A program made the position numbers and the translations under genes. Positions 4,082 to 56,638 of a DNA stretch of 64,000 nucleotides are shown one piece after another. Origin of the DNA: Octopus sinensis. Lineage: Eukaryota. Position 1 is the stretch's first letter, and each line of letters begins with the position of its first letter. Where the stretch lies: assembly GCF_006345805.1 (NCBI RefSeq), contig NC_043007.1, positions 68,882,001 through 68,946,000 on the forward strand. The letters run 5' to 3'. The notes beneath the pieces are model-generated. The model ran no database searches, was not told the origin of the DNA, and worked only from the letters and a program-made list of their open reading frames with translations.

Positions 4082-4290
4082 AAAGGTGACGAGCTAGCAG
4101 AAACGTTAGCACGCCGGGTAGAATGCTTGGCGGCATTTCGTCTGTCTTTACGTTCTGAGTTCAAATTCCGCGGATGTCACTGTGCTTTTCATCCTTTTGG
4201 AGTCGATAAATTAAGTACCAGTTGAGTACTGGGGTCGATCTAATCAACTGGCCTCCTACCCCAAAATTTCGAGCCTTGTGCCTTGAGTAT
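4082..4290 (+). mobile_element. tRNA-derived SINE with Nin-domain-like core (Octopus OR/OK-type)
   Basis: Head GAGCTAGCAGAA...GTTCAAATTCC (A/B-box-like) and core GTCGATAAATTAAGTACCAGTTGAGTACTGGGGTCGAT; the same core recurs many times in the window. Confidence 0.8.
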
Positions 4291-4387
4291 TTTTGGGTAA
4301 GAGAACAACAAATTCAATCGACCAGTCTTCTCTCAAGACTGGTGGTCTTGTATCTGAATTACAATCAGTCATTTAATATACTGTTTG

Positions 4388-8422: not shown

Positions 8423-9798
8423 GTACATGCACACACACACACAAGCATATGCATGTATGTATTCGGATTGTTGAATTGCTGAATACGCTTTGGGTGACTG
8501 TCAACGGCAGATAAACCACTTTCTTCCTTAAAATTATAATATATTTGTAAATGGTTAATATTCTTTTCAAGCATAGTTGCTTAGCATACAAAATGAAAAA
8601 CTAATGTTAAAGACAGGGAATAGTATATTTGGAGATCATGGGTCATTCCTGTGAAAGCACGCACTTAGCTGATAACTTTTGACAGTTTATATAATCAACC
8701 GAAGTTCTCTCTTGCATCAAATAAAGAACAATAATTTGAGAATATTTCGCTTAAAGCCTTGTGGTATTTGCACCCATTGTTCATATTCTTAGTTCGATTC
8801 TCGCCGAGGTCACCGTTGCCTTTAATTCTTTTGCTGTCGATAAAGTAAATTAACAGTCGAGTATTTGGATAGTTGGAATCGACAATACCAACCCTCTTCC
8901 ATTACAACTGCTTGCCTTGTGTTTTAATTAGAAAATATTACGTAGACAGTTGTATCCACTGTATCAGTTATTTTAAAGCAGCAAGATATTTCTCAGAAAT
9001 AATTTGTTGAATTTCTACTATCGTAAATGATTTCAACAAAAGTTCATTAGTCGGGTTTGTCTACAGAAGCCTAGTAGGGTTTCGCGGTAGTGCTGGTGGT
9101 GGCGGTGACAGTAGTGGTGGTGGTAGTGGTGGTGATGATGATGATGTTACTGGTGGAATTTGTGTTGATGGTGATGCTGGCGACGACAATGATGGTGGTG
9201 ACAATAAGAAGGATATGAACGAGAAGAAACGCAAGAACAAAATGAAGGATGCTAACCATTTAAGTAGTGAGAGAGAAAGGGAGAGAGAGTATGTGTGTGT
9301 GTGCATGTGTGTTTGTGTGGCTGTGATAATCGGTTAAATATTTGACAAGATAACGTTTGGTCTTTAATTTAAAACTAATCAAGTCACAACTGAGTTCTTA
9401 TTTATCTTTAATTTAGAATAGCTAAAACGCTATTAACAGTTCATTCCACTTGGGGATTTTCATATCCAAATATATTCGAATTGATTCACACCAATTTTCG
9501 CTGGTGTATATGTACTCCTATTGGGTATATATATATATATTATATATATATATATTATAATATATATATATATATATTAATAAATTTTAGGGTAGTAAAA
9601 AATTCTAGAAAAGTTCTCCGCTACCAGCGGTCAAGTGGGAAAGAGAAAAATAGTCAATAGACTATATAATATACATTCAAACATATAAGGGATGGCTATA
9701 ATAGAACATCCGACTCACTAGAAAGAGCAGCTAAACTCCAAACCACTAATAGTTGTAATTCTGAAATGGAAAAAGAAATAAAAACGTTTAACCCTTTC

Positions 9799-10848: not shown

Positions 10849-12149
10849 GAGGTAGAAAAGTAACACTCGAATTGATATGTATAAGAAAAATAAGACAAGG
10901 TAGGAAATGTTAAAATAATGTTATCATGAAGTACATTTTAGTACCGGTTTCCGCCCTTTAGATTTTTTCAATTAAGAGTTAAATAAAAAAAACAATTAAA
11001 TTGGAGAAACAAATTCAATGAAAAGTTTTGAAAATATTTCCATCGTCTTCAATTGGTCTGTTTGTCTCCCCTTGTCTTCCTTTGTGAATGCTTGGTAGGT
11101 TGGTAGGTAATTAGTAGTAAATCTGAGGGAATAGTTTTATGAGTACAGACAATTGATGGTTTAAGCAGGAGCAGCCAAAGGAGGAGGAGGAGAAGAAGAA
11201 GAAGAAGAAGAAGAAGAAGAAGAAGAAGAAGAAGAAGAAGAAAAAGAAGAAGAAGAAGAAGAAAAAAGAAGAGGAAGAAGAAGACAAAGGAGGAGGAAGA
11301 GAAGTGGTAGGGAAAGAAAACGAGAAAGAAAAGGAAAGGAAAGAAAAGAAAAGAAAAATACAAGACTGCTGTGACACCGTAGATTGTTCATAGCATCTTT
11401 AATGGTCAAATGACCTAAAAGTGACCTGTTATGGTCGTAGCAGTAGTGGTTAGAATTGTTCTAAATTCTTGTAGTAGTTTCATCTGTGGTGGAAGCGTTC
11501 AAAATAGGTTTATATTTTGCGATAAAATATGGTTCTTTGCTAAAGCGCTGATTATAGATTAGATTGTCCCTGAGTTTATACAGGAAAAAATTCTAAAGTT
11601 GGGTTGTTCGTTAGTGGCGCAAATATCGTTGTGCTCGTTTTATCCTATTTTTCTGTATTCTTGTATTTTAATCTGGGGTTTAAAAACAGTCCACACTAGA
11701 GGATTAAGGTACATGTACAAAGGATGATGGAATATATATATATATTTATATAACATATATTTATAAATATCATCAATAATATTAATACGCCAGTTTGTTT
11801 TTTGTAAGTACCTGATGTGTGTGTCACGCTTAAGAGAAAGGAATTGTTGAAAGAAATTTTGTTGCTTACATAAAATTTTTAATTAGTTGTTTTGGAATTT
11901 CTGGAAGAGACTTGAAACCACTGCCTATGTGTTGTATTACTACATCTCAACACTCATGCCTACTGCTCCACCGAAGCAACAACTGTCGTAATGGGAAAAT
12001 TAAGATACTTAAATTTGACGCGTGTCGAGAAAGGGAGAGAACGAAAGAGAGAGACAGTGAGAGGGAGTCGCTGAATTCCTTTGAATTCCTTTCTACGATT
12101 GAACTGAAATTGACTTCTGGCTATTAAAGGCCCAACCACACACACACAC

Positions 12150-14730: not shown

Positions 14731-15454
14731 TATAGTTCTTGAATATCATCCTGAAGACTGATTCAAATATATGTACGAGCGTGTATAATAAAAGTCAATC
14801 TAAAACTGAAATTATTTAATTGAGTGGCCCTCACATAAAATTGTAGAATTATGCCAGTAATAGAATTCGATATTTTTCATGTTGAATTCTCCCAAGACTT
14901 GATATGAAGTCGTGTGTCGAAATATATTATGTCGAGAGAGTCATTATACCAATAGTAAAACACACGACCTGGTTGTATTTGTTTTAGTTTTTATTTATTT
15001 GTAAATTAGTTTCCTTTCTCAAGGTACGACTCTTGATCTCATCATGGTGGGAAGGTTAAACGAGCGAGTTTCAGAGCTATGCCATCGGGGACCTCGAATC
15101 CCTGATAGATCCACCCAAAGTGGACAGGTCTGACAGCGGTGGTGCTAACTGGAGGGCGATGGGGAAGTCCTGGCGGCATCTTTTCCGGAATCCGGTGGTG
15201 TGGGTTCGCGTCTTTGGGCATCCTACGACGGGAAGGCGTAACACGAGGGCTTTCTCCCACCGGTCGTAGACGGTGGCTTATAATGCAGGCGGGAACAGTT
15301 TTCGTGGACTTTGATCATCCCTTGAAACTCACATGAACTCACAACCACGGTGAACTCAATAAGAGCCGGCATAACCCCTCTCAAGTGACTATTGTTACAA
15401 GACAAGACAAGAGTTAACTATTTAACCAGTTAATTAATTTATCAGTTGATTAAT

Positions 15455-15745
15455 TGTGCGGAAATGTGTCTTAGAAATAGGGACCACACCAGCTCGGCAT
15501 CGAGGAAGATTTCTAATCGGCGTAGCTGCAGTACGTGGCTACGCATCAGCAGCCATGGCATGACTAGCTCTCTCTCCAGAGGGCGCTGGTAACAGATGGA
15601 CCGTCTGACCAGTGGAATGCGTCTTTTCAACAGGAAACGGAAAGGTAAATGCTCCAGTCTGGCTAAACGTAGACTGGAGCAAAGCATAACGGCCTGGCGT
15701 GTATTAAGGAGGTTATGTGGTGACATGACCGCATGATCCCACTTT
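15455..15745 (-). mobile_element. Tx1-type LINE ORF2 fragment
   Basis: RLEHLPFRFLLKRRIPLVRRSICYQRPLERELVMPWLLMRSHVLQLRRL aligns by eye with RLERQLFRFLWKGRSPLVKRSVCCQKPLNGGLGMPWLMMRRHALRLRHL of the 30-35 kb element. Confidence 0.8.
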
Positions 15746-16484: not shown

Positions 16485-16830
16485 TTGGTTTCAAATATTG
16501 CCACACGGCCAACAATTACGAGGCAGGGGGTAAGCACTCAATTAGTACTTACTTTATCGACGCCGAAAGGCAAAGTCGACCTCGGCAGAATGTGAGCTCA
16601 ACGTAAAGACGGACGAAATGCCGCGAAGCATTTTGCCCGGCGTGCTAACGATTCTACCAGCTGATCTCCTTACATGTAGAGAATATTAGTTTCAAATTTT
16701 GACACAATGCCAGCAATTTAGAAGGTAGGTGTAAGTCAAATGCATCAATCCTAATGCTCGACTCATACTTATTTTATCGATTCTGAAGGAATGGAAGACA
16801 AAATCGACGGCGACGGAATTTATGTAACAC
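16485..16830 (-). mobile_element. Two adjacent Nin-domain-like SINE copies (16485-16672, 16686-16830)
   Basis: Reverse-complement of the SINE core and head (GTCGACCTCGGCAGAATGTGAGCTC...CCCGGCGTGCTAACG); the second copy is 5'-truncated. Confidence 0.75.
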
Positions 16831-22974: not shown

Positions 22975-25900
22975 CCACCTGTACCTACACCTTAGAACCA
23001 TCATGGCATCAGACGTGGCTTTTTAAACCAGACAATATTCTGAAAAGACACCTACACAGATTGCATATTCGATTTGGACCACTAAGAGGTGCAGATAAGT
23101 TCTGATCTTTGTGGATCTTAACATGTCTTTTGAGGCCTCCGTTAAATTTGCAAACCTTCTAGCGTACATTGCATTCAAAGTTGTGCACAGACATATAAGC
23201 AGAATAGCTGGTGGAGGTTAGTTTTCCATGGGTTCACAAATGAGATTTGAGCCCAGCAAAAGAAAAGCATTGTCCGTCACAAACTGTGCACAAAAAAGAT
23301 CATTGTGATTCACCTTCTCGATCGTAACATTCTTCCTTAAATCTTCTTTGAGTCTTGCAAGCGTTATCCTGGCCTCTTCAAACGCTTTCACTCCACTCCA
23401 CACTTTTGTTCGTTATCCAGCTCGATCCGAAGCAAAAGTTTCTATGTCATCTGGTTCCATTCCAAGTGACTTCATAGTAATCCTTATGCCGTTCTTAAAC
23501 CTTTTTTTAGGTTTACGCCGATAGCGTTTCCCCTCTGGAAGCTCACCATAAAACAACTATTTGGGCATGCGTTCATCCACCATTCGAACAATATGGCTAC
23601 ACCAGCTCAGTTGCTTTCTCAGAATTATAGCTTTAATTGAGGCGATGCTTGCAGATGCAAAGACATCTGTTTTTGGTGGAATTGTTCTAACAATTTAAAA
23701 TATCTTTCATAACAAGTTCATGTTTCACAAGAATACAACAGGGATGATAAGACAAATGATTTGTAAGGAACCAACTTTCTATTGTTATTTATGTGTCGCT
23801 GGCGCCAAACACGTGACACCAATCCACCATATGCTTTTGCAGTCCTTTCAATTCGCAGATGTATTTCTGTATCAAGATTTCCATCATTTTGAAAAGACCT
23901 TCGAAGGCAGATGAACGAATCAGCAACCTCAACAGCCCTTAACAAAAGGTTTAGTGGGGTTACAAACAGCACCATACTCAGGTTGATGCATTACAACTGT
24001 TTTTTTTTTATTTTTTCAAGTTGATGGTCAAGCCCAAATCATCACAAGCTGACTCAAATGCCGATACAAGAGATTGCAGACCTGTTTCAGAATAACTGAC
24101 AAGATCGCAATCGTCAGTGTATAAAAGTTCACTAATGAGTGAAGTAAAAACCTTCGTCTTGAATTTCAGTCTGGTCAGATTAAAAACATTCCCTGTTGTT
24201 CGATATTGTATATAAATACCCTCCTCAGAGCTTTGAAAAGCCTGTGACAACACAACAGCAAAGTATATTGCAAGGAGGGTGGGTGCATCAAGGTCTCCTT
24301 GCTTTATTCCATTTTCCACGGCAAAAAATTCAGAGAGCCTACCAACAAAACTTATCTTGATACAAAATCATATCTTGATGCAAAACCTTGATCATGTTTA
24401 GAAATTTTTCTGGGTAACCTATTTTCCTTTGAATTAGCCACAGAGCATTTCGATTAACAGTAGCGAATGCTTTTCTCAAATCAACAAAGCAATGATATAG
24501 GGCAAGATTCTGTTCAATGCACTTTTCTTGAAATTGTCTGATAGTAAAGATACAATCAGCTTTGCCACTGGAGGAACGAAAACTACACTGAAACTCAGAC
24601 ACTATATTTGGAACTATCAGACCCTGGAGATTTATTGTCATTCAGCTTATTCACAGCTAAATAAATGTCATTTAGAGTTTGTTCAAATGCCATCTCTTCT
24701 ATAACTGGAAAATGTTCGATTTTTTTTATCATGATCATGTCAGCAGATGATGATCTATTCGAAAGTGCAGAAAAATGTTCTACCTAGCGCTTATGAATTG
24801 AAGCGGCGTCAGTCAGAAGCAAACGTCTATTTGCCGTTCTCACTGTATCTGTTGAAGATTTTGGGCCATATACCTCCTTAACATAAGAGTACAAACCTTT
24901 GACATCATTTCTGTCAGCTGCTTCTAGTGCCCTTTTGCTCTAGCATTCTACCATTCCTGTTTAATTTTCCTCAGAGCAGTCTGCACTTTCCCTTTCAGCT
25001 TTCTGTAAACTTCGCTTGTGCTGGGGTTCAAGAACTGAGAAGGGAGTGTATTGCCTAAGTTTTGTTTTTCTAAAAGTAGATCATGAATTTCTGCTGATCT
25101 ATCTGAGAACCAGTCACTGGAGTTACGTGATTTAAATCCCACTGACGAACTTCCAGACTGAAATACGTTTCTTTCAAAATCTTCCCATAGATTGTTTGGG
25201 TCAAGATTGATACTTTCTATAGGATCGTTGAATCTTTGCAAGTTCCTTGATAATTTAAAGTTTGCAACATTGAATTTCTTGGTTACCTTAGGACCAGCCT
25301 GTCGATTTTTAGGCATTATCGAAAAACATTTTCCACGCACCCGACAATGGTCAGTCTTACTCTCTGCTCCTCTCATGACCCGAATGCTAGAAACATATTT
25401 TATATCACGTTTCTGATCAAAATATAATCTAAGAGATGCCATTGCTTAGATCTTGGGTGCATCCAGGTGGTTTTATATATATATTTTCTGCTTAAACAGA
25501 GTGTTGGTAACAAACAAATTATTCTCTGTACAAAATGTCAAGAGAGCTACTCCATTTTTATTACATTTTCTAATTCCATGTCGACCTAAAACAGGCCATG
25601 GAATGTAGTCCTTTCCAAAATTGCGTTGAAATCTCCCAATATGACTAGCTTGTCAGAAATTGGTACTTTCCTCAATAACTGTGCTAGATCATCATAAAAT
25701 TGTCCTAAAGTTTCATCAAAATAGGACATTGTTGATGCATAAATACTGACAACGGCAAGAAACCTACCTATTGACAGTTTAATACGGCATGACATGGTTC
25801 GTTCAGAGACACCACTTGGAAGCTCGGCAATGAAGGATACTAATGAATTCTTGAGAGCCAAACCAGCACCAGCTTCTCTACGTTGACGCTTAGGTAGGCC

Positions 25901-26225
25901 TCTCCAAATGATAGTGTATCCATAAGTGGGTTCATTTACTTGACCCTCACCAGAGAAACGAGTTTCAGAGAGTGCAACTATATCAAGGACATATTTCTTA
26001 AGCTCACATGCTTTCTGGCCTCTTGTTGAAATTATCATCAAGAAGTGTGCGCACATTCCAGCCAAAATTCAAAGGATGTTTATTTTTACTTTATCTTGAA
26101 GATTGTTTGACCACAGTGGCAGGATGGCGACCGGGCCCAGCCTGCGATACACTGGGACACCTGCTGAGCCAGACCTGTTCCCTTGACGTTCCCAAGCCTT
26201 TTTTGCCATTTACTGAATGCGCTTG
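22975..26225 (-). mobile_element. Degenerate RTE-clade LINE (APE endonuclease + reverse transcriptase)
   Basis: DIVALSETRFSGEG, VSIYAST, LVILGDFNA (EN); FVDLRKAFATVNR, GIKQG, LLYTDDCDL (RT); many stops and frameshifts; ends approximate. Confidence 0.9.
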
Positions 26226-28237: not shown

Positions 28238-28664
28238 GGCGGTGGGCTGGCAAAATCGTTAGCATGCCGTGCAAAATGTTTAGCGGCATTTCGTCTGTCT
28301 CTACATTCTGAGTTCGAATTCCTATTATCCTTCTGAGTCAATAATGTAAGTCAATAATGTAAGTACCAATTCAGTTCTGGGGTCGATGTAATCGATTTAT
28401 CCCCTCTGCCGAAATTGCTAACCTAGTGCCCAAATTTGAAATCAATATTCCTTTCTAGTATTGGCACAAGGCTTGAATCTTTTTTGGAGAGGGCTAGTCG
28501 ATTATATCGATCCTAGTGTTTGATTGGCACTTATTTTCCTCGACAGCCAAAAGGATGCGAAGTAAAGTCGACCTCGGCGGAATTTGAACACAAAATGTAA
28601 AGAAGGACGAAATGGTACAAAACAATTTGTTCGGCGTGCTTACAATTTTACCAGCTCGCCGCCT
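28238..28664. mobile_element. Tail-to-tail pair of Nin-domain-like SINEs (28238-28445 +; 28459-28664 -)
   Basis: Both have a head (GGCGG.GRGCTGG) and core; the + copy is flanked by an imperfect 15-nt TSD (AATATT...TTCTAG). Confidence 0.8.
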
Positions 28665-29024: not shown

Positions 29025-30143
29025 GTAATGTCAAAAGTGCAAATCCCGATAAAACTGTCCTTCACAATCTATTTATCGATCGATCAGATTATTTTAGCCA
29101 TATCTGTGTGCTGCAAGCAGGCAGTAAAAAACCGTGCGCGCGCGCACACACACGCACACGCGCACGCACACACACTCATGTGGTGTGTATGTGTACGCGT
29201 GCGTCTGTCTGTGTGCGTGTGTGCCAATAATAATATGTGCATTTAGTTTTGTGAGAAAATGCCTAATTGACAATCCGCATAAGCTAGGGTATACGGTTTT
29301 CAGAAAAAGCAATCAACTAACTAACTGGCATATTTCAATTACAATCTTTACGTGGCAAAGTAAAAATAGGCAACACTTTTCTCAAGTTTAAATTCTGACA
29401 TTGTTTTTATTTTCTACATTCCAGCGTTGGAGTTTTGCATGTTTGTTAGATACCAGCTCCTTCCTCAGAGGAAGAATTCAAAAAGTTAAAAACAGAATTG
29501 AACATACATACCTAGCGCGCATACACGCACACATACACAGAGTCTTGGAGATAAATTGGAACAATTTTTTACGATGCATAACACTGGTTATAGATACTAA
29601 AATAATGGTAGTAGACAGATATAAATTTAATGTAGCATTTATTACAACAAAACTATTTCCACTCAATATGGCGGCCCTTTTTGGCAATTACTGCCTTTAC
29701 ATGAGAAAGAAATTTGTTTCTTTATCACCCACAAGGGGCTAAACATAGAGGGGGCAAACAAGGACAGACAAACGGATTAAGTCGATTACATCGACCCCAG
29801 TGCGTAACTGGTACTTAATTTATCGACCCCGAAAGGATGAAAGGCAAAGTCGACCTCGGCAGAATTTGAACTCAGAACGTAACAGCAGACGAAATACGAA
29901 TTTCTTTATTGCCCACCGGGGGCCAAACATAGATATGGACAGTACAACTGATGGGATCAGTGAATCGATATGATTTTACATAAATGTGACATCAAAAAAA
30001 ATACAATACATAAAATCGAATGGAATACACAGTACAAAAACAATACAAATGAAGCTATGATCAAGTTACGCTCCGATCCCACAAGCCCCGATCTACCGCT
30101 GATACCTTTTTATTTTTCCTTTTTTTTTTTTTTCCTCGTCTAT

Positions 30144-33100
30144 TCACACGGTTCCTTGCACGCACAACACTCGTGCAACATACTTCCATCTCTTTTGGAA
30201 CGTACACTCTGACAGACACCTCTTCTCCAGCCACAGTTTCCTTTTCAAATGAAAAGAAAAAAAGGATCGTAAATTGTCACCAGAGATAAAGTTGCCTGTC
30301 TTAATTCCTTTTATCCTAGTATTCCATACAGCCTCTTTTGCTATTGCTACAACCGTGAGAAAACAATTCTTACCTTCGTTCGTTAGAACTCCCTGTGGGT
30401 CAATATTTATAATTGACTCAGTCGACAGCCGTACTCTTCCTTCGCCGGACAACAGATGTTCAGCATAAGCCCACATTTCAGTTATCTCCGGACACTGAAC
30501 AATAGCGTGAGGGACGGTTTCCCTGTCCCCCACCGCATCTTGGACAGGTCGGCGACTGACGTTTACCATGTCTTGCGAGCTTATCCCAAACGGGCAAGGC
30601 ACCTCTGTAGCATTGCCAGGTTAAGGACTTTTGGAAGTTGTCCAACGTTCTCAACCCGAATGTACGATGAAACAAGCTGTCCAGTTGAATAAATCCGAGA
30701 CCTAGAGTCGACCCCAGGCCATCGTCGCATTCAGACTCTACCTACCCACTATATAAAATCCGTGTGGAACCCCCACCGCTGGCGTTGCCCGAGCGCCGGA
30801 ACAGCAAGAGGGCCTTACGGCACTCTTTATGCCACTCACTCGACCTCGGTCTACGAGAACACCAGGCTTCCTGTTCGCAAAAACTCTTGAACTCAGGGAA
30901 CATTTGTCTGGCCAGCGGAGACCACACCCGTTCACTATCCAGGAGAATCCAGAGGTGCCTCAACCTCAACGCATGTCTGCGCATCATTAACCAAGGCATC
31001 CCTAAACCTCCATTTAAAGGCTTTTGACAGCAGACAGAGCGTTTCACAAGTGGCGACCTGCCCTTCCACAAAAAGCGAAAGAGCTGTCTCTCCAACCTGA
31101 TCAACCACGAATCCGGACAGGGCACGACAGTCAGGCGGTAGGTAATGACCGATGCGATAAACACATTGGCCACTTCCGCCCTCCCTTTCAGGGATAGCCA
31201 CCGCCAAGACCAGGTCTTGACTACTGCAGCCACCCTGCTCAATACCTCCGTCCAGTTCTTCTCTATCTGGAGGCCTGGTCCAAACCAGACTCCCAGCAAC
31301 TTAACCGGTCCCTCCGTCCAGCGCCTAACAACACTGTCTGAAGGCATCGACTTGCCAACCCAGGTGCCGAGCTGCAAGCCGACCGACTTTTCCCGGTTAA
31401 TCTTTGCTCCTGCTACCTCCTCGTAAGCCTCAATAGTCTTACCTACTTCACGTAGGCGTGCCACTGTGGTTACACTGATAGTGATATCATCCGCGAAAGC
31501 CGTAACAAACTCCTCTAGTCCTGGTTCTCTCGGGATGCCACTCAACTTTGCAGTAATGGCTCGAGAGCCATCACATACAAAAGTGGTGAAAGCGGACATC
31601 CTTGACGAACCGAGCGTCTGATGCAGAACGGCTTCGAAAGGAAACCGTTCACCCGAACTATCGAGTCAATGTTGTGGTACAAAGCGATAAACCACCTGAG
31701 GAAGCCAAGGACCAGGCCAAACCGCGCAAGTACAGTCGTTAGGTATCGATGGTCAACCCTATCAAAAGCTTTAGACTGGTCCAAATGCACCAATGCCCCA
31801 CCTTTGCCAGATTTATTACCAAACCTCTCTATGGTATAGCGAATAAGATGGAGGGTATCCTGAATGGTTCTGCCTGGGATGGCACATGTCTGTGCCTCCC
31901 CGACTATACCATTCGCGACACGCGCCAACCTTTTTGCTAGAACCTTGGCCAAAATCTTCACTTCTGCGTTTAACAGTGTGATGGACCTGAAATTCTCTAG
32001 AACGTCCCCCTTGTCCGGGTCCTTTCTGACCAACGTCACTACTCCCCGGCGCACAGATCTGGGGATAAACCCATTCTGTTTCCAGTTCGCGTACACGTCA
32101 GTCAGTAGTTGCCCGAACAAGTCTGGCATACATTTATACAGCTCGTACGGAAGACCATCAAGTCCCGGTGACTTACCCGCTTTACAATCGGCCAAAGCCT
32201 CCATCACCTCCTCAAGTGTGATTGGCCCTTCGCAAGACTCCGCATCCGACCCCGAGAGGCACGGCAGCCCGGTAAGAAAGTCCTCGAGGGCTCTCCCCCG
32301 AACAGCTGGGCGAAGTACTCCCGAAAGACCTCACACATTTTCTCGGGTTCGTTTATCAAGACACCATTTTGATTCGTCAAAGACCGAATAGAGGAACTAT
32401 TTCCTTGCCGAGCTTCCACCACTCGGGCCCATCCAGCGGCTTTGATTCCTTCACTTCCCATTGCACGTAACTTAGCTCTGGTAATACTTCCCATGTGGTG
32501 GGCTTCAAGATGCTGGTTTAACTCCAGTCTTTTCACCCTCGCTTGGTCTGTATTACCAGTCCTCCAGGCTTCTTCTAGTTCCTTAACTAGACCATCTCCT
32601 ATTTTACGTCCCTTCTTAGCTAAACTTATGCTAAACCTAATAGACTCATATTTGATGGCTCTTTTTAGGGCGTACCACCATTTGTTATTAATGATGGTAC
32701 CTGTTAATGCCCTCTGTATTAACATCTTGATCCGCTTTCTGTACTCCTCAATCGCCAAAAGGGACGTATTGAGTTTCCAGTAGCCAGATCCCTGTCTATG
32801 CAACTTATCTACCGTCAGTTTACAGGTAACCATCTTGTGGTCACTGTAGCTGACTAGAAAAAACTGTGGACACTCAACTATGGACTTATCTTTTTCTCTA
32901 ATTAAAATCCTATCTAGATATGTTCTGGTAGACCCGTCACTATTTGACCACGTCCACTGTGGAGTGTTCGCGTGCTCCAACCTATATGGATCTGCTAGCT
33001 GAAATTGGCTTAGCAGATCCCGAAAGCCTGTGTTACATTTTCTGTTCATGTTCGAGTTTGAGCCAACACAATCTGTGTGTGCTGCACATATTGTATTAGA

Positions 33101-33522
33101 GTCTCCTAACACTACTAGTGAATGCGACGTGGCTAGGAACTTTCCTAGGCCACGAAAATATTCAGTTTGCGGGCCAATAATGTTTGGTGCATAAATAGCG
33201 ACCAGCCTGATTGTCTTGCCACAACTGAATGTCAAGTCGAGAACGACCAGCCTGCCTTCTGGGTCAGAAAAAACCAACTTTTTCTCGGCTACCCGGTTTC
33301 TTTTTAGTAGGACCACACCCCACCCCCACCTCCCGCCCGACTCGGAGAAACGTATTTCTCGTAGCCGTTCAGGAGGGGGAGCAGATCTCTTGGCCCCTTC
33401 ACCCGGGTTTCCGTTGCAACAATTACATCCAAATTCCTCGACCTGATGTCATTCAGAAAGCGTCCTTGCTTCCAGCTTGACAACAGGCCATGAACATTTA
33501 AACAACCAATGTGAATAGCCAT
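30144..33522 (-). CDS. Tx1-like ORF2 (APE endonuclease, reverse transcriptase, zf-RVT), frameshifted
   Basis: IGCLNVHGL, ATETR, LVAIYAPN, VLGDSN, YLDRI, SDHK (EN); SPGLDGLPYELY, DQSKAFDRVDH, RQGCPLSPLLY, FADD (RT); CPRC...ETVPHAIVQC; split into about six ORF-track pieces. Confidence 0.88.
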
Positions 33523-33533
33523 CACTTACCTGT

Positions 33534-35058
33534 TTAATTAGGATTGTCTGGTGGAGGGGGGACCTCCACCTTTTTTTATCCAGGGTCGGAGGTGGACGGT
33601 CTTGGGAAATAGATTTGTCAAAATCCCGTCTCACCACCGACACAGAATTATCAGGTGGAGGGGGAATCTCCACCTTTTCCTTTTCTCGCGGGATCGGAGC
33701 TGGTAATCCATGAAATATCGACTTGTTAAAATCTAATCTCAATGAAGATACAGTCTTTCTGTACTTATTTTGTAGAATTCTATAAGTCTTATTTGAGACT
33801 TCATATATGTCGTAATTGATAAATTCCTCTGAAAGGTTATCAATTTTTTTTACAGTCTTTATGAGTTGAATGTCTCTCATGAGCTCAGTATCTTTAGTGT
33901 ATACGGCTATTATGCCTTTTTCTTCTTTTTCTCTTCTGGCAGTCTTTTTTGGTCGTTGTTCTGTAGTAGTCGCCGCTCTCGGCTGGGTTGCTGGTTGTAT
34001 TTTTCTTTTGTTTGTTGTTTTTCTCATCTGTTTCTTCTTTATCTTCTTCCTCTTTGTCTTTTTTCTCCTCTTCCTCCTCTTCTTCATTTTCCTTGCAGTT
34101 CCTTCGAATGTGGCCTAATTGACCACATAAAAAACATCGAGGTTTTCGGCCCTCAACAAACACCACGAGGTTCTCCTCCCCTACCTCAATTGTCTCAGGA
34201 ATTGTTTGAATTATTTTAGGGTCCGCTTGAATGAGAAGATTAATTGTTTGACCATCCCAGCGTGGGTTTTCCGTAGCGGTAGCCTGGAGGAGAGTAATTT
34301 TTTCTACCTCTTTGATTAGGACTGCCGCCAACAACCACATAGGTTCGACCTCTGGCGGGACCCTTGTAATTTTTATTCGCGACGTCCTCATCCCCATATA
34401 ATAGGGTATTAACTCCACGTCGTTCGTTTTCAACGTTTCAACTGAGTTCTTGTGTGCTATTTCTTTATTGGTGAACCTTACTTCCACCGTTCCGAATTTT
34501 TTCCTCTTCTCAGAAATACTACGTCGCCCAATATTGGCTTTAAGCACTTTTCTATTTTCTCTTCTGACATTCTTTCAATTTTTCTATTTTGTAGACAATA
34601 TGTTTTGAAAATTATTGTTTTTTGCTTTTCTTCCTGTAATAACTTTTGCGGAGGTTCAATTTTCACACTGTTGTCAGTTATTTCCATCATTTTGCTGTAT
34701 TTCATAATTTCGCTTTTATTCGTCGACAGTATCTGGGTTCCACCCCCAGCAGCCAACGCAAAACTTTTTTTCCATTTTTTGGTTCTATCTGGATGCTAGG
34801 CACATCAATTATTCTCTTCGACACAATGCCTTTGTTCTCTGGCAAAGTCGGAAACTCTTCTGGTGAAAGTTCTGACGAGCTCTCAGACACATCTCCAAAA
34901 ATATCAAATATATTATCCTCTCTGCTATTCCTTCTTGTAGCGGGGGAAACCCCTATTTCCTTGTCTGTAGTTGGCTCCTCGCCGGACATGTATTTCCTCC
35001 TCTCAACAGGAGAAACAAGTATTTCTGCTCCAACGGTAGGCTCCATGCTAGACGACAT
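33534..35058 (-). CDS. Tx1-like ORF1 (gag-like, zinc knuckle), frameshifted
   Basis: CFLCGQLGHIRRNC at 34095-34136 preceded by the typical L1/Tx1 ORF1 region and followed by an acidic/basic tract; pieces in four frames. Confidence 0.8.
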
Positions 35059-36034
35059 TCTTCCCCCCAAAGGGGGAATGAACAACGCGTGCTACCACAA
35101 GCACTAAGTGTTTTCAATTGAAAACTCCAACAGTTAAGTTATTCAACAGTTTAACAAGAAACAACAGTTGTTAACAATATTAACACCACGAAACAGCAAT
35201 TCTTACTTCACGAACACATGTGCGACAGACGAAATACGGCTACGCATTTCGCCCGGCGTGCTAACGGTTCTGCCAGCTCGCCGCCTTAATGAGAAAGAAA
35301 TTGTTTTGCAGCTGCCGTAATCTCTGCCACTTTGAATCCGTGTGTCGCACGCACGATGCAGGTCTTCAAACTGTTGACACTCGAGTGTTGTGAAGCATTG
35401 GTCCTTGCTTGAAGTATGCCTCATAAAAAGTAATCGAGAAGGTTGAGGTCTGGGCTATTATTGGGTCAGATGTAGTCCCTCACAAAAACTTGCACCAGAA
35501 ACCCCATTTATGTTAACACTGCAAAAACTAAAAATCAGTATGAACTTTCTTCTGCTCACATCATGTGTATGGTAAAATAAAACATTTGCTTTCTCTTCTT
35601 GTTCAGCCAATTATGTGGGGCACTTGAGTAAACGGAGCAGATTCAATGTATTTTCCACTGCTTATCTTAATCATTTATATGATAACGAATTTTCATAAAA
35701 TCCGTTGTGATGGAACCTCGTTGATCTTAGTCGTAAAACTGTCACAAACGTAATAAATGCACATATATTCACGAGGCATACTGATTAAATTATTATTATC
35801 TGAAGAAATATTATAATAAATACAAAATGGTTCAAATATAATTGTAAAGACAAAATAGTTAGTCTCATCTCAAAAATATATGCTATTAAAAACCAAAGAC
35901 AATTTTTATATCAGAATCAAAACTGTTATATTGGTAGATTTTTAAAAATAAGTGTGTGTGTGTGTGGAAGAGAAAGGGAGATGTATGTATATGCATATAC
36001 ATATATATATATATATAATATATATATATATATA

Positions 36035-36982: not shown

Positions 36983-38240
36983 CAGGGTGTTTGAAATATT
37001 TGAGGACAGATTTATGTTCATAAAAAAAATACAGATGTATAATAGCAGATAATAACTTTATCAAACGATGCTGAGAATAAAAATAAACCTTCTTTATAAT
37101 GTTATTCAATAAAGTGACCTTCAGCTTCAACAAGCGCTTTTATATGAGATCTAAATCATCTACATGCTTGAATCAAGTAGTCCTGGTTCACATTGGACAT
37201 TACTCTGCCAATGGCATCTTTCATAGAATCTTTGGTGTTGTGAGCATGTTCATTGACCCCTCTCTCTCTCTCTCAACAACGCTCCAGATGTAATAGTCCA
37301 GTGAGATCTGGAGAATTAGGAGGCCAAATCTTTGCGGTTATGGGATGATGAAAATTTTCAGCCATGCATTCCTGTGTTACTAGAGCCTTGAGTGATAGTG
37401 CAGAGTCTTACTGAAACACATATGGCCTTCCATTGCATACACTATCTATCCAGGGCTTAACAATTATTTCCAGGACCTCAATGTAGGCAGCAGAGTTAGC
37501 TCTAAGGCCTTGTGGAAAGAAATAATGAGGTATCACATGTACGTCATTGCTGACAACCCTTAAAATCATGACAGCTGCAGAAAAATTTGTATGCATAACG
37601 CTTGGAACTTCAGAATGGTCTGCACATAACCTTCTGTCATTTCTTCTGTTAACTTTTTGATCTTGGTCGAAGTTTTTTTCGTTTGAGAAAAACCAAATCA
37701 AATCTTCTTCTGCTTGATTTTCCAGTTTCTTTAAGAGCCTTTTATATCTGATATAGTGATTTTCTTTTGCTTTTCTGACAAATTGATCTTTTCTCATCAT
37801 ATAAGACTTATATCTGATGTCTTAGTGGACAACATTTCTGAGTGTTCTTTCTGACAAATGGAGATATTTTGCAATTGACCTCATGGACTTTCTGGGATTT
37901 TAATCAATGGTCTGTTGAACTTGCTGGATAACTTCGGGTGCTCTGATGCCTTCTGAGCATGTAGGATGTTTTATGCTTTGACACTGGTGTTACGTTTCCA
38001 TCTTCAATCTCTAGCTCCTTACACACTTTGTAGACGAAAGATCTGGTAACTTTTAAAAATCGAGATATTTCTAAATCGCTAAGCTCAGCCTTTATACCAC
38101 AATAACAGCATGCCTCTTCATTTCTTGAGTTAGCTCCAGGCCTGCCATTATCATTTTCTGAAGCAAAGATTATACAGAGTTAGCAAAAAAAAATGCAGCA
38201 ATGACCCAAAAAAGGTGTCCTCAAATACCTTAGGACCCTG
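36983..38240 (-). mobile_element. Tc1/mariner element, maT (DD37D)-like, degenerate
   Basis: Imperfect TIRs CAGGGT...TATTTGAGGACA at both ends, TA at right flank; WFFSNEKNFDQDQKVNRRNDR, GRPYVFQ, WPPNSPDL motifs. Confidence 0.85.
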
Positions 38241-50067: not shown

Positions 50068-51112
50068 AAACCCGTGTGTAATGTATTTTCCCCAATAGCT
50101 ATCTATCTATCTATCTATCTATTGAACTACAACATATTCGTATGTATTTTTAATGAGACGTATACACATACGCTCATACTGACACATGCAAGCATATAAC
50201 ACAGCTTCTAAGCTGTCGCTTGACATGCTAAAAATACCAACACACTCCTTCGAATCATATTCACTATTTATGAAAAATAAAAAAAGTAATATGAAATTGG
50301 AAAATGTATTCCAAACTACATAAAAGATATGTCAAAAGTGACAAATAAACAGGACGGTCATAATTGGAAAAGTTTGATATCATAGCCAGTCTGATCGATC
50401 TTTATTTTGATATCATAGTCAGTCTGATGAAGCATTAAATGCCACTCTAAAAAGTTTACAGACGCGCGTGCACACACAGCTGTTCCTGGTTCATTACGCT
50501 AACCGATGGGAGAAGTTATATGGGATGGTTTGACCTGCTAGAATAGCCAAATTTCTTACAAGAGCCCTCTTTGAAACATTAAATTCTTCAAACTTGGCTT
50601 CACGTAAGTCTTTGAGCCGAGTTAGAGAACTTCAGTTCTTTGTTTTCGTTTTTAATCATTACACTGTTCTATACGGGTACATTTTGGAAAAGCGCAATGT
50701 ATATATATTATATATATATAGATATATATATATATATATAATATATATATATATGTGTGTGTGTGTGTGGTGTGTGTGTGTGTGTGTGTGTACATATGTA
50801 TGCATGCAAATATATATATGTGTGTGTATGTTTACGTATGTATATATATTTAACCGTATATATAAGTATAAATATATATATATATGTATAAATACACACA
50901 CATATATATATATAGATACATATACATACAGTGTATGTATATATGTATGTATTTGTGATTGTGTGCAGACGCGTGTATGTATGCATGTATTGTTTACAGC
51001 TCTTTATTTTCTGAGATCAAATCCCGCCGAGGTCATCTTTATTCCAGTCAAGTAATGGAGTCGATCCTCTCAAACTCAGTAGGCTTGTTCCAAAATTAAA
51101 AAGAATATTATG

Positions 51113-51172
<60 letters not shown>

Positions 51173-51214
51173 GTTATTGTTGTTGTTTTTGTTGTTTTTG
51201 TTGTTGCTGTTTTT

Positions 51215-51380
51215 GTATTTCGTCTGTCTACGTTGTGAGTTCAAATTCCACGGCGGTCGACTGTGCCATTCATACTTTCGGAGGTCGATAAATTAAGCAC
51301 CAGCTGCGTACTTGGTTCAATCTAATCGACTGGCCCCACCCCCAAAAGTTCGGGCCTTGTGCCTAGAGTAGAAAAGATTA
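51215..51380 (+). mobile_element. 5'-truncated Nin-domain-like SINE (further fragments at 5790-5890, 8740-8890, 61225-61340, 61440-61625)
   Basis: GAGTTCAAATTCC...GGTCGATAAATTAAGCACCAG...GGCCTTGTGCCTAGAGTAGAAAAG. Confidence 0.75.
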
Positions 51381-55438: not shown

Positions 55439-55708
55439 GTAAAAGCTGCAATACTTATCTAACAGCAGCTTGCATATTGCCTTCACTGCACGGTCATTTC
55501 TTTTAGAGACAAATAAAACAAGGGAAGAAATCTTAATAACTTATCGATCTGCAAGTACATCAGCAGCAACATAAAGATAACCGCAACAGCATCAGCAGAA
55601 GTTAATATTTTTATCAACTTGCCTTAGAGGAAGAAAGAACAAGAGATAAAAAGACACTGACTGTTGCATGAAACGGATTTGAAATTCCCTATCCTTCAAA
55701 CCAACGAA

Positions 55709-56638
55709 ATGCATTCTTATGAAATAATTCTAAAATTAAGTCTTGCCGTTTTGGCATCTTCACTGCTTGTGGAAACTCATGACTTTAAAAGCTACTCGAA
55801 TGCTGACAAAAGGTTTAGGGCGTCTGGTGACAGAATAAAAGACCTGCTAAGAAAAAGAAATGTTAACAGTTTCATGGAAATGGAAAGCCCAGAGAATTAC
55901 ATTCGCGAACTGGCTGCTAATCGAGGAATTGAAATTGACTATCCAGAACATTTTGACAAGAGAATTAGAGAATTAGTCGGCAAACGATATCCTGAAAATT
56001 TTGACAAAAGAATTCGAGAATTGGTTGGCAAACGAGGAACAGAAATTGACTATTCCGATCACTTTGATAAAAGAATTAGAGAATTGGTTGGCAAACGTGG
56101 GACCGAAATAGAATATCCTGATCACTTTGACAAAAGAATTAGAGAATTGGTTGGCAAACGAGGAAACGATGTGGAATATTCTGATCACTTTGACAAAAGA
56201 ATTAGGGAGTTGGTTGGCAAACGAGGATCAGAAATTGAATTTCCTGACAAGAGAATTCGGGAACTGATTGGTAAACGTGGAGGTGAAATTGATTATCCTG
56301 ACAAGAGAATCCGAGAATTGATCGGTAAACGAGGAGGCGAAGTTGAATATCCTGAAAATTTTGAGAAGAGAATTAGAGAATTAATTGGCAAACGAGGCAC
56401 TGAAATCGAATTTCCAGACAAGAGAATTAGAGAATTAATTGGTAAAAGAGGAACTGAAGTTGAGTATCCTGAACATTTTGACAAGAGAATCAGAGAACTG
56501 GTTGGTAAACGTGGAAATGAAGGTGAAAATGCCGAACATTTTGACAAGAGAATCAGAGAATTGGTTGGTAAAAGAAGTGTTCCATCAAATATCAGTAAAA
56601 ACGTCGTTAAACGAAATGTAGAGAAAGTAGAAGGTTAA
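55709..56638 (+). CDS. Neuropeptide precursor (309 aa) encoding IRELV-amide x7 and IRELI-amide x4; possibly PRQFVamide/LRNFVamide-related
   Basis: First in-frame ATG at 55709 (the ORF track starts at TTG 55664); signal peptide MHSYEIILKLSLAVLASSLLVETH; 11 KR-IREL(V/I)-G-KR cassettes; extensive synonymous variation between cassettes. Confidence 0.93.
   Translation: MHSYEIILKLSLAVLASSLLVETHDFKSYSNADKRFRASGDRIKDLLRKRNVNSFMEMESPENYIRELAANRGIEIDYPEHFDKRIRELVGKRYPENFDKRIRELVGKRGTEIDYSDHFDKRIRELVGKRGTEIEYPDHFDKRIRELVGKRGNDVEYSDHFDKRIRELVGKRGSEIEFPDKRIRELIGKRGGEIDYPDKRIRELIGKRGGEVEYPENFEKRIRELIGKRGTEIEFPDKRIRELIGKRGTEVEYPEHFDKRIRELVGKRGNEGENAEHFDKRIRELVGKRSVPSNISKNVVKRNVEKVEG

Follow-up and report, generated by a model that had tools for sequence, protein, structure and literature searches.

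A hairpin-bearing 3' tail shared by an L1/Tx1-like LINE and a putatively tRNA-derived SINE suggests a stringent-type partnership in octopods

Nested LINE and SINE insertions

We analyzed a 64-kb window of the Octopus sinensis genome (the whole stretch of 64,000 nt; NCBI RefSeq assembly GCF_006345805.1, contig NC_043007.1, positions 68,882,001 to 68,946,000 of the forward strand; coordinates below are counted from its first letter). In this window a long interspersed element (LINE) that appears to be L1/Tx1-like is nested inside a putatively tRNA-derived short interspersed element (SINE), and both elements end in nearly the same 33-nt 3' tail. The shared tail suggests that such SINEs are mobilized by such LINEs, as had been proposed from the letters of this DNA alone (the sequence-only reading). 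All elements of the nested site are on the minus strand, and the plus-strand strings quoted in that reading are the reverse complement of the functional strand.

Followed on the minus strand from position 35303 downward, the site consists of: (i) a repeat of about 20 nt, CAATTTCTTTCTCATTAAGG (35284-35303), which is the 5' copy of the target-site duplication (TSD) of the SINE and the last bases of which may belong to the SINE head; (ii) the 5' part of the host SINE (35226-35287), a tRNA-related head that ends in ...GCCGTATTTCGTCTG and is 83% identical to positions 1-64 of the full-length SINE at 4083; (iii) the LINE itself (29899-35225), a degraded copy of full-length size (5327 bp) with Pfam matches to zf-CCHC, Exo_endo_phos and, twice, RVT_1, the ends of which are set by a 13-bp TSD; (iv) the 13-mer CGTATTTCGTCTG (29886-29898), which is the 3' copy of the LINE TSD and also a part of the host SINE; (v) the remaining SINE, down to 29717; and (vi) the direct repeat CAAATTTCTTTCTCATGTAAAGG (29694-29716), the 3' copy of the SINE TSD. 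The 5' copy of the LINE TSD (35226-35238) matches the 3' copy at 13 of 13 positions. The 3' part of the host SINE (29717-29898) includes a B-box-like GTTCAAATTC, a CORE-like body and the LINE-like tail; it is 86% identical over the body to the SINE copy at 4135-4249, and this similarity ends where the tail starts. The two halves of the split SINE share a private variant, GTATTT (consensus GCATTT).

The SINE was inserted first, and the LINE landed inside it later; the TSD of the host SINE, of about 20 bp, has two indels by now, and the 13-bp TSD of the LINE is still perfect. The nesting and the two separate TSDs indicate two independent insertions, not a local duplication. It should be noted that the two tail copies are only 184 nt apart and in direct orientation, as might be expected if the 33-nt repeat had resulted from a long TSD, a segmental duplication or gene conversion between neighbours. 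However, the TSD of the LINE is a different 13-mer, the TSD of the SINE flanks the SINE tail, and each tail is thus part of a separate insertion unit; moreover, the SINE tail predates the arrival of the LINE, and the same LINE and SINE tails are found unlinked at other loci and in other species. We regard such a local artefact as extremely improbable. We also rejected the particular variant in which a SINE entered the LINE tail and left the 33-nt repeat as its TSD, since the nesting runs the opposite way.

Classification of the LINE

The first open reading frame (ORF1) of the LINE is represented by a segment (33894-34547, minus strand, as are all LINE segments given here) with one CCHC zinc knuckle, as in type I ORF1 proteins (zf-CCHC, E 4.5e-5, above the cut-off), and the Pfam search of this ORF1 found no Transposase_22 match and no RRM. 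The N-terminal segment of ORF2 (32204-33316) is of the APE-type endonuclease (Exo_endo_phos, E 9e-4, below the Pfam cut-off); it lies upstream of RVT_1, in the same arrangement as in the relatives, which are annotated with PF03372 and PF00078. The reverse transcriptase (RT) region (30742-32207) is split between two frames, 31542-32207 and 30742-31599 (RVT_1, E 4e-18 and 3e-5, respectively), and is followed by a C-terminal Cys/His-rich segment (30144-30602), for which zf-RVT (PF13966) is annotated on the relatives P0001-P0003; tblastn of the relatives reaches the C-terminus at 30153. The stop codon ends at 30144, leaving a 3' untranslated region (3'UTR) of 245 nt (29899-30143), 69% identical over 225 nt to the 3'UTR of another O. 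sinensis chromosome copy, L025. There are at least three frameshifts and one in-frame stop in ORF2; thus, this copy is dead.

Among solved structures, the best match of the RT was human L1 ORF2p (E 1e-33, residues 10-444, i.e., 435 residues), while R2 proteins matched more weakly and in the palm only (E 1e-16 to 1e-11); CR1 and RTE structures do not exist and so were outside this comparison. At the protein level, the LINE is closest to a relative from Argonauta hians (58% identity). Type I ORF1 proteins, with CCHC and/or RRM, have been described for Tx1-type L1 elements of non-mammalian animals (PMC5203782), and repeat annotations of octopus genomes list L1-Tx1 as the L1-type group that is present and active (PMC13282606, PMC8967140). 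The combination of a CCHC ORF1, an APE, an RT and a Cys-rich C-terminus supports placing the LINE in the L1 superclade as a Tx1-like element.

The shared 3' tail

A degenerate pattern covering both tail strings matched at 29717-29749 and 29901-29933 and nowhere else in the window, with 0 matches expected in shuffled sequences. A tail-like motif at 37506 was also considered and was rejected as a chance match within unrelated sequence. By BLAST, the two tails are identical at 28 of 33 positions (84.8%); thus, the claim of the sequence-only reading that about 33 nt are shared with about five differences was accurate, as was the LINE start at 29901, and the SINE start had to be moved from 29718 to 29717. 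On the minus strand, the LINE tail reads TCTATGTTTGGCCCCCGGTGGGCAATAAAGAAA and the SINE tail TCTATGTTTAGCCCCTTGTGGGTGATAAAGAAA, or, divided into segments, TCTATGTTT-GGCCCCCGGTGGGC-AATAAAGAAA for the LINE and TCTATGTTT-AGCCCCTTGTGGGT-GATAAAGAAA for the SINE. Each tail is the extreme 3' end of its own element and adjoins the TSD of that element, without poly(A); the termini that abut the TSDs are ...AAAGAAAT(T) and ...AAAGAAA(C). Taken to its terminus, the LINE tail (29899-29933, minus strand) reads TCTATGTTTGGCCCCCGGTGGGCAATAAAGAAATT and is conserved in relatives of the LINE. The SINE tail (29717-29749, minus strand) is also 34/38 identical to the tail of L025. If one 12-nt insertion in the SINE is allowed, the similarity between the LINE and the SINE reaches about 10 nt farther upstream (...CTGTCC...). 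The preceding part of the SINE 3' module, TCCGTTTGTCTGTCCTTGTTTGCCCCC (29750-29776, minus strand), is common to SINE tails of Argonauta, as judged from an alignment.

The sequence complexity of the 3' half, AATAAAGAAA, is low, and two A/T-rich ends, both with a poly(A)-signal-like AATAAA, could in principle resemble each other by chance or convergence. Nevertheless, the G+C-rich hairpin described below and the CTATGTTT arm are also common to both tails, the shuffles yielded no expected matches, and the SINE tail matches that of L025 at 34 of 38 positions; coincidence is therefore a virtually negligible explanation.

The variation of the tail between species was also compared. The LINE and SINE tails are 28/33 identical within each species, both in the octopus window and in Argonauta, and across species the values are 22-25/33 for LINE-LINE and LINE-SINE pairs and up to 26/33 for SINE-SINE pairs. 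For example, both elements of the window have C-G at one stem pair together with CTATGTTT, and both Argonauta elements have G-C together with CTGTGT. This within-species matching is the pattern expected if SINE tails track the partner LINE. It should be noted that AAUAAA is kept in 5 of 6 LINE tails, and nearly all SINE tails have AAUAGAG or GAUAAAG instead (window tails; L025, 11031-11070; L021 and L026); this suggests a poly(A) signal that would serve the Pol II-transcribed LINE only.

The tail in related and unrelated LINEs

The additional octopod DNA consisted solely of contigs that encode LINE proteins. In the close relatives of the window LINE (47-68% amino acid identity), the tail terminates a 3'UTR of about 230-640 nt wherever the 3' end is readable. 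In L025, the 3' end is ...TGTCCCCCTCTATGTTTGGGCCCTTGTGGCTAATAAAGAAATT (core ...CCCCCTCTATGTTTGGGCCCTTGTGGCTAATAAAGAAATT), and this tail is closer to the window SINE tail than the tail of the window LINE is. L025 lies in a tandem-repeat-like flank (11070-11800 and 9000-9700; the units resemble GATGTTCTACCACAGTTGTCACCAGTC), so its TSD is not readable. In Argonauta hians, L001/L021 ends in ...TTCTGTGTCGGCCCTTGTGGCTAATAAAGAAATCTAT and has an older tail 360 nt upstream, i.e., two tails, and L026 ends in ...CCCCTCTATGTTTTTGCCCTTGTGGCTAATAAAAGAAAT followed by (ATT)n. The metagenome contig L002 has ...GGGCCCTTGTGGCCAATAAAAGAAATC, again followed by (ATT)n. In L027 the tail is partly kept, with CTCTTGTGGCCAAT present and the end lost, and L020 stops 113 nt past the stop codon, ahead of any tail. 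Thus, the tail of the window LINE is not a one-off chimera: the same tail is carried by L025, L001/L021, L026 and L002.

The more distant LINEs of the clade, L004, L022/L023 and L024 (42-50% amino acid identity), all from one ENA sample, keep the core of the hairpin. Their 3' ends have the form ...CCCCCAAAAC.TC.AGGCCTTGTGCC (...GGCCTTGTGCC...), after which come another hairpin with covariation and GAAATAAAA. In 23 kb of this sample we saw no octopod SINE; the presence of the hairpin core in distant LINEs without octopod SINEs indicates that this core is a property of the LINE clade, not a recent loan from a SINE. L022/L023 (ENA ERZ21867824, contig ctg88761c) are two full-length Tx1-like LINEs with identical ORF2, arranged in tandem 6.8 kb apart.

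The window also contains a second, more decayed LINE of another clade (about 22990-26100, minus strand), with an APE (25586-26065), an RT (24008-24641) and C2H2-like C-terminal motifs, which matched none of 120 Tx1-like proteins. At the 3' end, this second LINE passes into a (CA)n/(TA)n microsatellite, and no similarity to any SINE tail is seen there; the alternative that the tail matches a LINE of a different clade better thus found no support here. In a search of metagenome contigs with the degenerate tail pattern, 15 loci were found, all of them chance matches in bacterial coding sequences and none in cephalopod DNA.

These comparisons bear on the direction of transfer, which is not readable from two sequences. 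The LINE could have picked up a SINE-derived 3' end through read-through or template switching, with the SINE moved by a CR1, L2 or RTE-type LINE that is the true source of the tail; active RTE, CR1 and Dong-R4 LINEs are found in octopus genomes, and their 3' ends are outside the present comparison. Against a transfer from SINE to LINE, the hairpin core is present at the 3' ends of LINEs of the clade across 42-68% amino acid identity, including the source without an octopod SINE in 23 kb; the tail is always terminal in a long LINE-specific 3'UTR; and AAUAAA is retained by LINE tails and lost from SINE tails. Another engine is disfavoured by the non-L1 LINE of the window, which lacks such a tail. 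We consider this alternative improbable, and infer that the tail was passed from the LINE to the SINE and not vice versa.

SINE copies and tail types

BLAST detected about 12 copies or fragments of the SINE in the 64-kb window. They are short, dispersed and multicopy, and a TSD is seen at the host copy. A B-box-like GTTCAAATTC is visible, as is a head common to all copies. ARAGORN and Rfam had no match in the 64-kb window; a search for the SINE core in viral and prokaryotic genome contigs had no match. The body is one that we take to resemble the CORE domain, judging from annotation labels used in the literature.

As the sequence-only reading had pointed out, other copies of this SINE core in the window carry different tails. 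We define three types: type A, ...GGGCCTTGTGCCTAGAGTAGAAAAGATT or CCCCCAAAATTTCGGGCCTTGTGCCTAGAGTAGAAAAGATT (e.g., 51353-51380); type B, ...GGCCTTGTGCCAAAATTTGAAAC-like or AAATTGCTGGCCTTGTGCCAAAATTTGAAAC (e.g., 16500, 16701, the 28400s and 51551); and type C, the LINE-like tail of the host SINE. The copies used for comparison, all identified by BLAST, were a SINE at 51217-51380 (plus strand) with the type A tail CCCCCAAAAGTTCGGGCCTTGTGCCTAGAGTAGAAAAGATT followed by (ATT)n, a full-length SINE with a type A tail at 4083-4295 (plus strand), and a SINE at 16500-16671 (minus strand) with the type B tail GGCCGTGTGGCAATATTTGAAAC. The type A tail of the copy at 51217 is identical at 27 of 32 positions to the 3' end of the distant LINEs L022/L023 (E 4e-4, for a small database). 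The hairpin and its loop recur in types A and B, where one stem pair is flipped with respect to type C. Thus, the proposal that the SINE body swaps tails between partners was borne out with respect to the swapping; the alternative tails are variants with the same hairpin, and the partners are probably sister families and not LINEs of different clades. As a hypothesis, tail swapping would represent movement among sister families of one LINE clade; octopus LINEs cognate to types A and B were not found.

Type C-like tails are abundant in Argonauta, in which we found six matches to the tail pattern in 10 kb, against 0.01 expected. There are 10 tail copies in the 22-kb locus L021 and 18 in the 20.8-kb locus L026; 3 of these 28 are on LINEs. 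The remaining tails, about 25 in 43 kb, are mostly at the ends of SINEs, with at least two kinds of body: one is the CORE-like body of the window SINE, and the other has a 3' module of 60 nt that can be aligned with the corresponding module of the window SINE. Two Argonauta SINE copies were read in detail; in both, the tail adjoins a TSD, of 11-13 bp and about 14 bp, respectively.

The tail hairpin

The center of the tail can form a hairpin with a 4-bp stem and a 5-nt loop, which is usually CUUGU. In the LINE tail this is GCCC-CCGGU-GGGC (29911-29923, minus strand), present in both the minimum free energy and the centroid folds, and the sequence of the SINE tail has GCCC-CUUGU-GGGU (29727-29739, minus strand). 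A shared stem-loop, which had been proposed as a check of the partnership, is thus found in LINE and SINE tails, and the stem has compensatory changes. Specifically, in 14 LINE and SINE tails, 96% of the cells are paired, compared to 5-49% when the partner column is slid; in 19 tails, with types A and B and the distant LINEs added, the values are 84% and 28-51%, respectively, and three of the four pairs have changes on both sides (GC/CG and GU/AU/UA), the covariation score being reached in 0 of 500 shuffles; all these tails are related sequences, which inflates the pairing and covariation counts.

The hairpin and the distribution of tails bear on another possibility, namely, that the tail is a relic. 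The SINE would have gained it from this LINE clade in the past, the copies now seen would have been amplified by relaxed, tail-independent mobilization, and the tail would be functionless at present. The single copy with a type C tail in the window and the thermodynamic weakness of the hairpin are compatible with this. On the other hand, no element ends in poly(A), which is used by relaxed L1-type mobilization; dozens of Argonauta copies retain an intact tail precisely at the terminus; the hairpin has compensatory changes; and LINE and SINE tails track each other within species. A relic tail is, in our opinion, unlikely.

Probable stringent-type mobilization of the SINE

Shared 3' tails of SINEs and LINEs are an established principle that reflects the behaviour of stringent-type LINEs (PMC3747384). 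We consider it likely that the L1/Tx1-like LINE and the tRNA-derived CORE-like SINE form such a stringent-type partnership in an octopod genome. For the stringent-type Tx1 partnership put forward in the sequence-only reading, the tail match and the family-wide occurrence of the tail hold, and the mobilization itself is deduced from them.

Several points weigh against this interpretation and should be taken into account. The name Tx1 extends only as far as the L1 superclade with a type I ORF1. The LINE copy of the window is dead and hence does not act as the driver. The stem of the hairpin is just 4 bp long, and the support for it is comparative and not thermodynamic: the folding energies of the tails do not differ from those of shuffled sequences (z from -1.2 to +1.0), and a longer stem that takes in the flanking U-rich and A-rich arms (86% paired) is conserved but has almost no covariation. 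Among non-L1 LINEs, the comparison of 3' ends comprised a single element, that of the window, and left out octopod CR1, RTE, L2 and Dong-R4. Only one SINE with a type C tail was seen in the 64-kb window, and a further 20.8 kb of O. sinensis had none; in Octopus this subfamily thus appears to be rare or old, and the evidence for abundance is that from Argonauta.

Under a stringent-type mechanism, the 3' module of the LINE RNA, of about 35-40 nt, would consist of a U-rich arm, the 4-bp hairpin with a CUUGU-type pentaloop, and AAUAAAGAAAU(U), and a copy of this module would form the 3' end of the tRNA-derived SINE, with AAUAAA serving polyadenylation of the Pol II transcript of the LINE only. By analogy with stringent-type LINEs (PMC3747384), the ORF2 protein of the LINE may recognize and bind the hairpin module. 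The target would then be nicked, and target-primed reverse transcription would start from the terminal GAAAU(U) and not from a poly(A) tract, sometimes with (ATT)n slippage; the resulting insertions would lack poly(A) and would be flanked by TSDs of about 11-20 bp. Presumably, a SINE RNA made by Pol III and ending in this module would be copied in trans.

A broader and more tentative proposal, which we see as possible, starts from tails A, B and C as variants of one hairpin tail: the bulk of octopod CORE-SINEs would then have been driven by sister families of one L1/Tx1-like clade through stringent hairpin recognition, with subfamilies that switch between these families by swapping tails. SINEs make up about 8-12% of octopus genomes, and their expansion is octopus-specific (PMC13282606, PMC8967140). 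If the proposal is true, no earlier SINE expansion of large size in an animal has been ascribed to a stringent LINE of the L1 superclade, and this burst, which occupies about a tenth of octopus genomes, would be the first. The L1/Tx1-like clade as the likely engine would offer a concrete, testable account of the octopus SINE expansion. The octopod pair would also add an animal case to the very few LINEs of the L1 superclade that share a specific 3' tail with a SINE, and it is relevant to the question of whether the L1 clade ancestrally had stringent recognition of 3' ends. For RNA-protein and retrotransposition work, the small hairpin and its compensatory changes provide a well-delimited target.

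Comparison with known systems

It had been stated in the sequence-only reading that shared tails are uncommon for the L1 clade, in agreement with a 2012 survey that lists 3 SINEs with L1 tails among 58 pairs, despite more than 800 L1-clade LINEs in the database. The cases of SINEs with L1 tails in the review PMC3747384 are plant and algal.

The octopod pair resembles the stringent pairs of Ohshima and Okada (e.g., eel UnaSINE1/UnaL2; PMC3747384) in that the 3' end of the SINE is homologous to the end of the LINE 3'UTR, a stem-loop is conserved, poly(A) ends are absent, and one SINE body occurs with different tails. It differs in that nearly all of those pairs involve CR1, L2 or RTE-type LINEs, whereas the octopus LINE is L1/Tx1-like; in addition, the octopus stem has only 4 bp, and the end is GAAAU(U), sometimes with (ATT)n, and not L2 repeats. 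A stem-loop at the 3' end of an L1-clade LINE is shared with a SINE in the maize and sorghum SINEs with a monocot L1 lineage and in the Chlamydomonas pair SINEX-3_CR/L1-1_CR (PMC3747384, PMC3472496); however, the algal pair, at least, ends in poly(A) repeats, and the octopus elements have no poly(A), an animal host and another tail sequence.

In crocodilians, a Tx1-group LINE has been inferred as the engine of a SINE (SINEU/Tx1-Mar; Kojima 2015, PMC4494074). In the accessible portion of that report, the inference is based on a common target-site preference together with 5' heads derived from snRNA, whereas ours is based on the 3' tail and its hairpin; the SINE heads differ as well, being derived from snRNA in SINEU and from tRNA in the octopus SINE. 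The octopus CORE-SINEs OR1, OR2 and OK (Ohshima and Okada 1994, cited in PMC4758252 and PMC4824008) are similar to the window SINE in being abundant, tRNA-derived and CORE-like, as far as they are described in the citing papers, the comparison being by description. In mammals, L1 and Alu likewise represent a LINE of the L1 superclade that serves a non-autonomous Pol III SINE, but this relaxed system depends on poly(A) recognition and its 3' ends have no homology, in contrast to the specific shared tail without poly(A) of the octopus pair.

Repeat annotations refer to octopus SINEs as tRNA-Core or tRNA-Deu, and in a 2026 annotation of O. vulgaris 893 of 900 recently active SINE families were unclassified. 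The partners of bivalve SINEs reported so far include Nimb and CR1-Zenon, and Tx1 is unmentioned in the paper concerned. In the searchable literature, no partner LINE is named for octopus SINEs; Repbase and Dfam entries were outside this search, and a prior annotation there is possible.

Additional observations

The LINE was inserted into the host SINE at GTATTTCGTCTG, and the SINE copy at 51217 starts at the same nucleotide (two cases only). Target-specific insertion is typical of Tx1-group elements. Possibly, GTATTTCGTCTG marks a hot spot for insertion within the SINE, in line with such a target preference, although two cases prove nothing. The SINE at 51217 is 5'-truncated and is preceded by the type B tail of another SINE and by (ATT)n/(GTT)n (51080-51230, plus strand). 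In Argonauta, new insertions are often found tail-to-head, directly behind an older tail (L001, 6258-6652 and 9058-9063; L021, 13621-13909); these include a 5'-truncated LINE 3'UTR 130 nt past a LINE tail, and two SINEs placed one directly behind the other. This arrangement is a further hint of target preference, from a small sample.

At 15445-15717 (minus strand) there is an isolated piece, 270 bp long, of another Tx1-like LINE; it has no 3' end and is 52-56% identical in amino acids to P0001/P0002. An ORF of 324 amino acids at 55664-56638 (plus strand) has a sub-threshold HNH-endonuclease-like similarity as its sole match (E 0.004). A protein from a metagenome-assembled genome labelled "Herbaspirillum sp." (P0122/P0180; NCBI MCP3653585.1, WP_288064025.1) corresponds to the C-terminal part of a LINE of cephalopod type (73% identity to P0002), and its 1.8-kb contig is probably animal contamination of the bacterial bin. 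Finally, the SINE copies at 28238-28322 and 28579-28663 are inverted relative to each other, with 85-nt arms that are 78% complementary and 256 nt apart; this pair is a potential source of double-stranded RNA, if transcribed.

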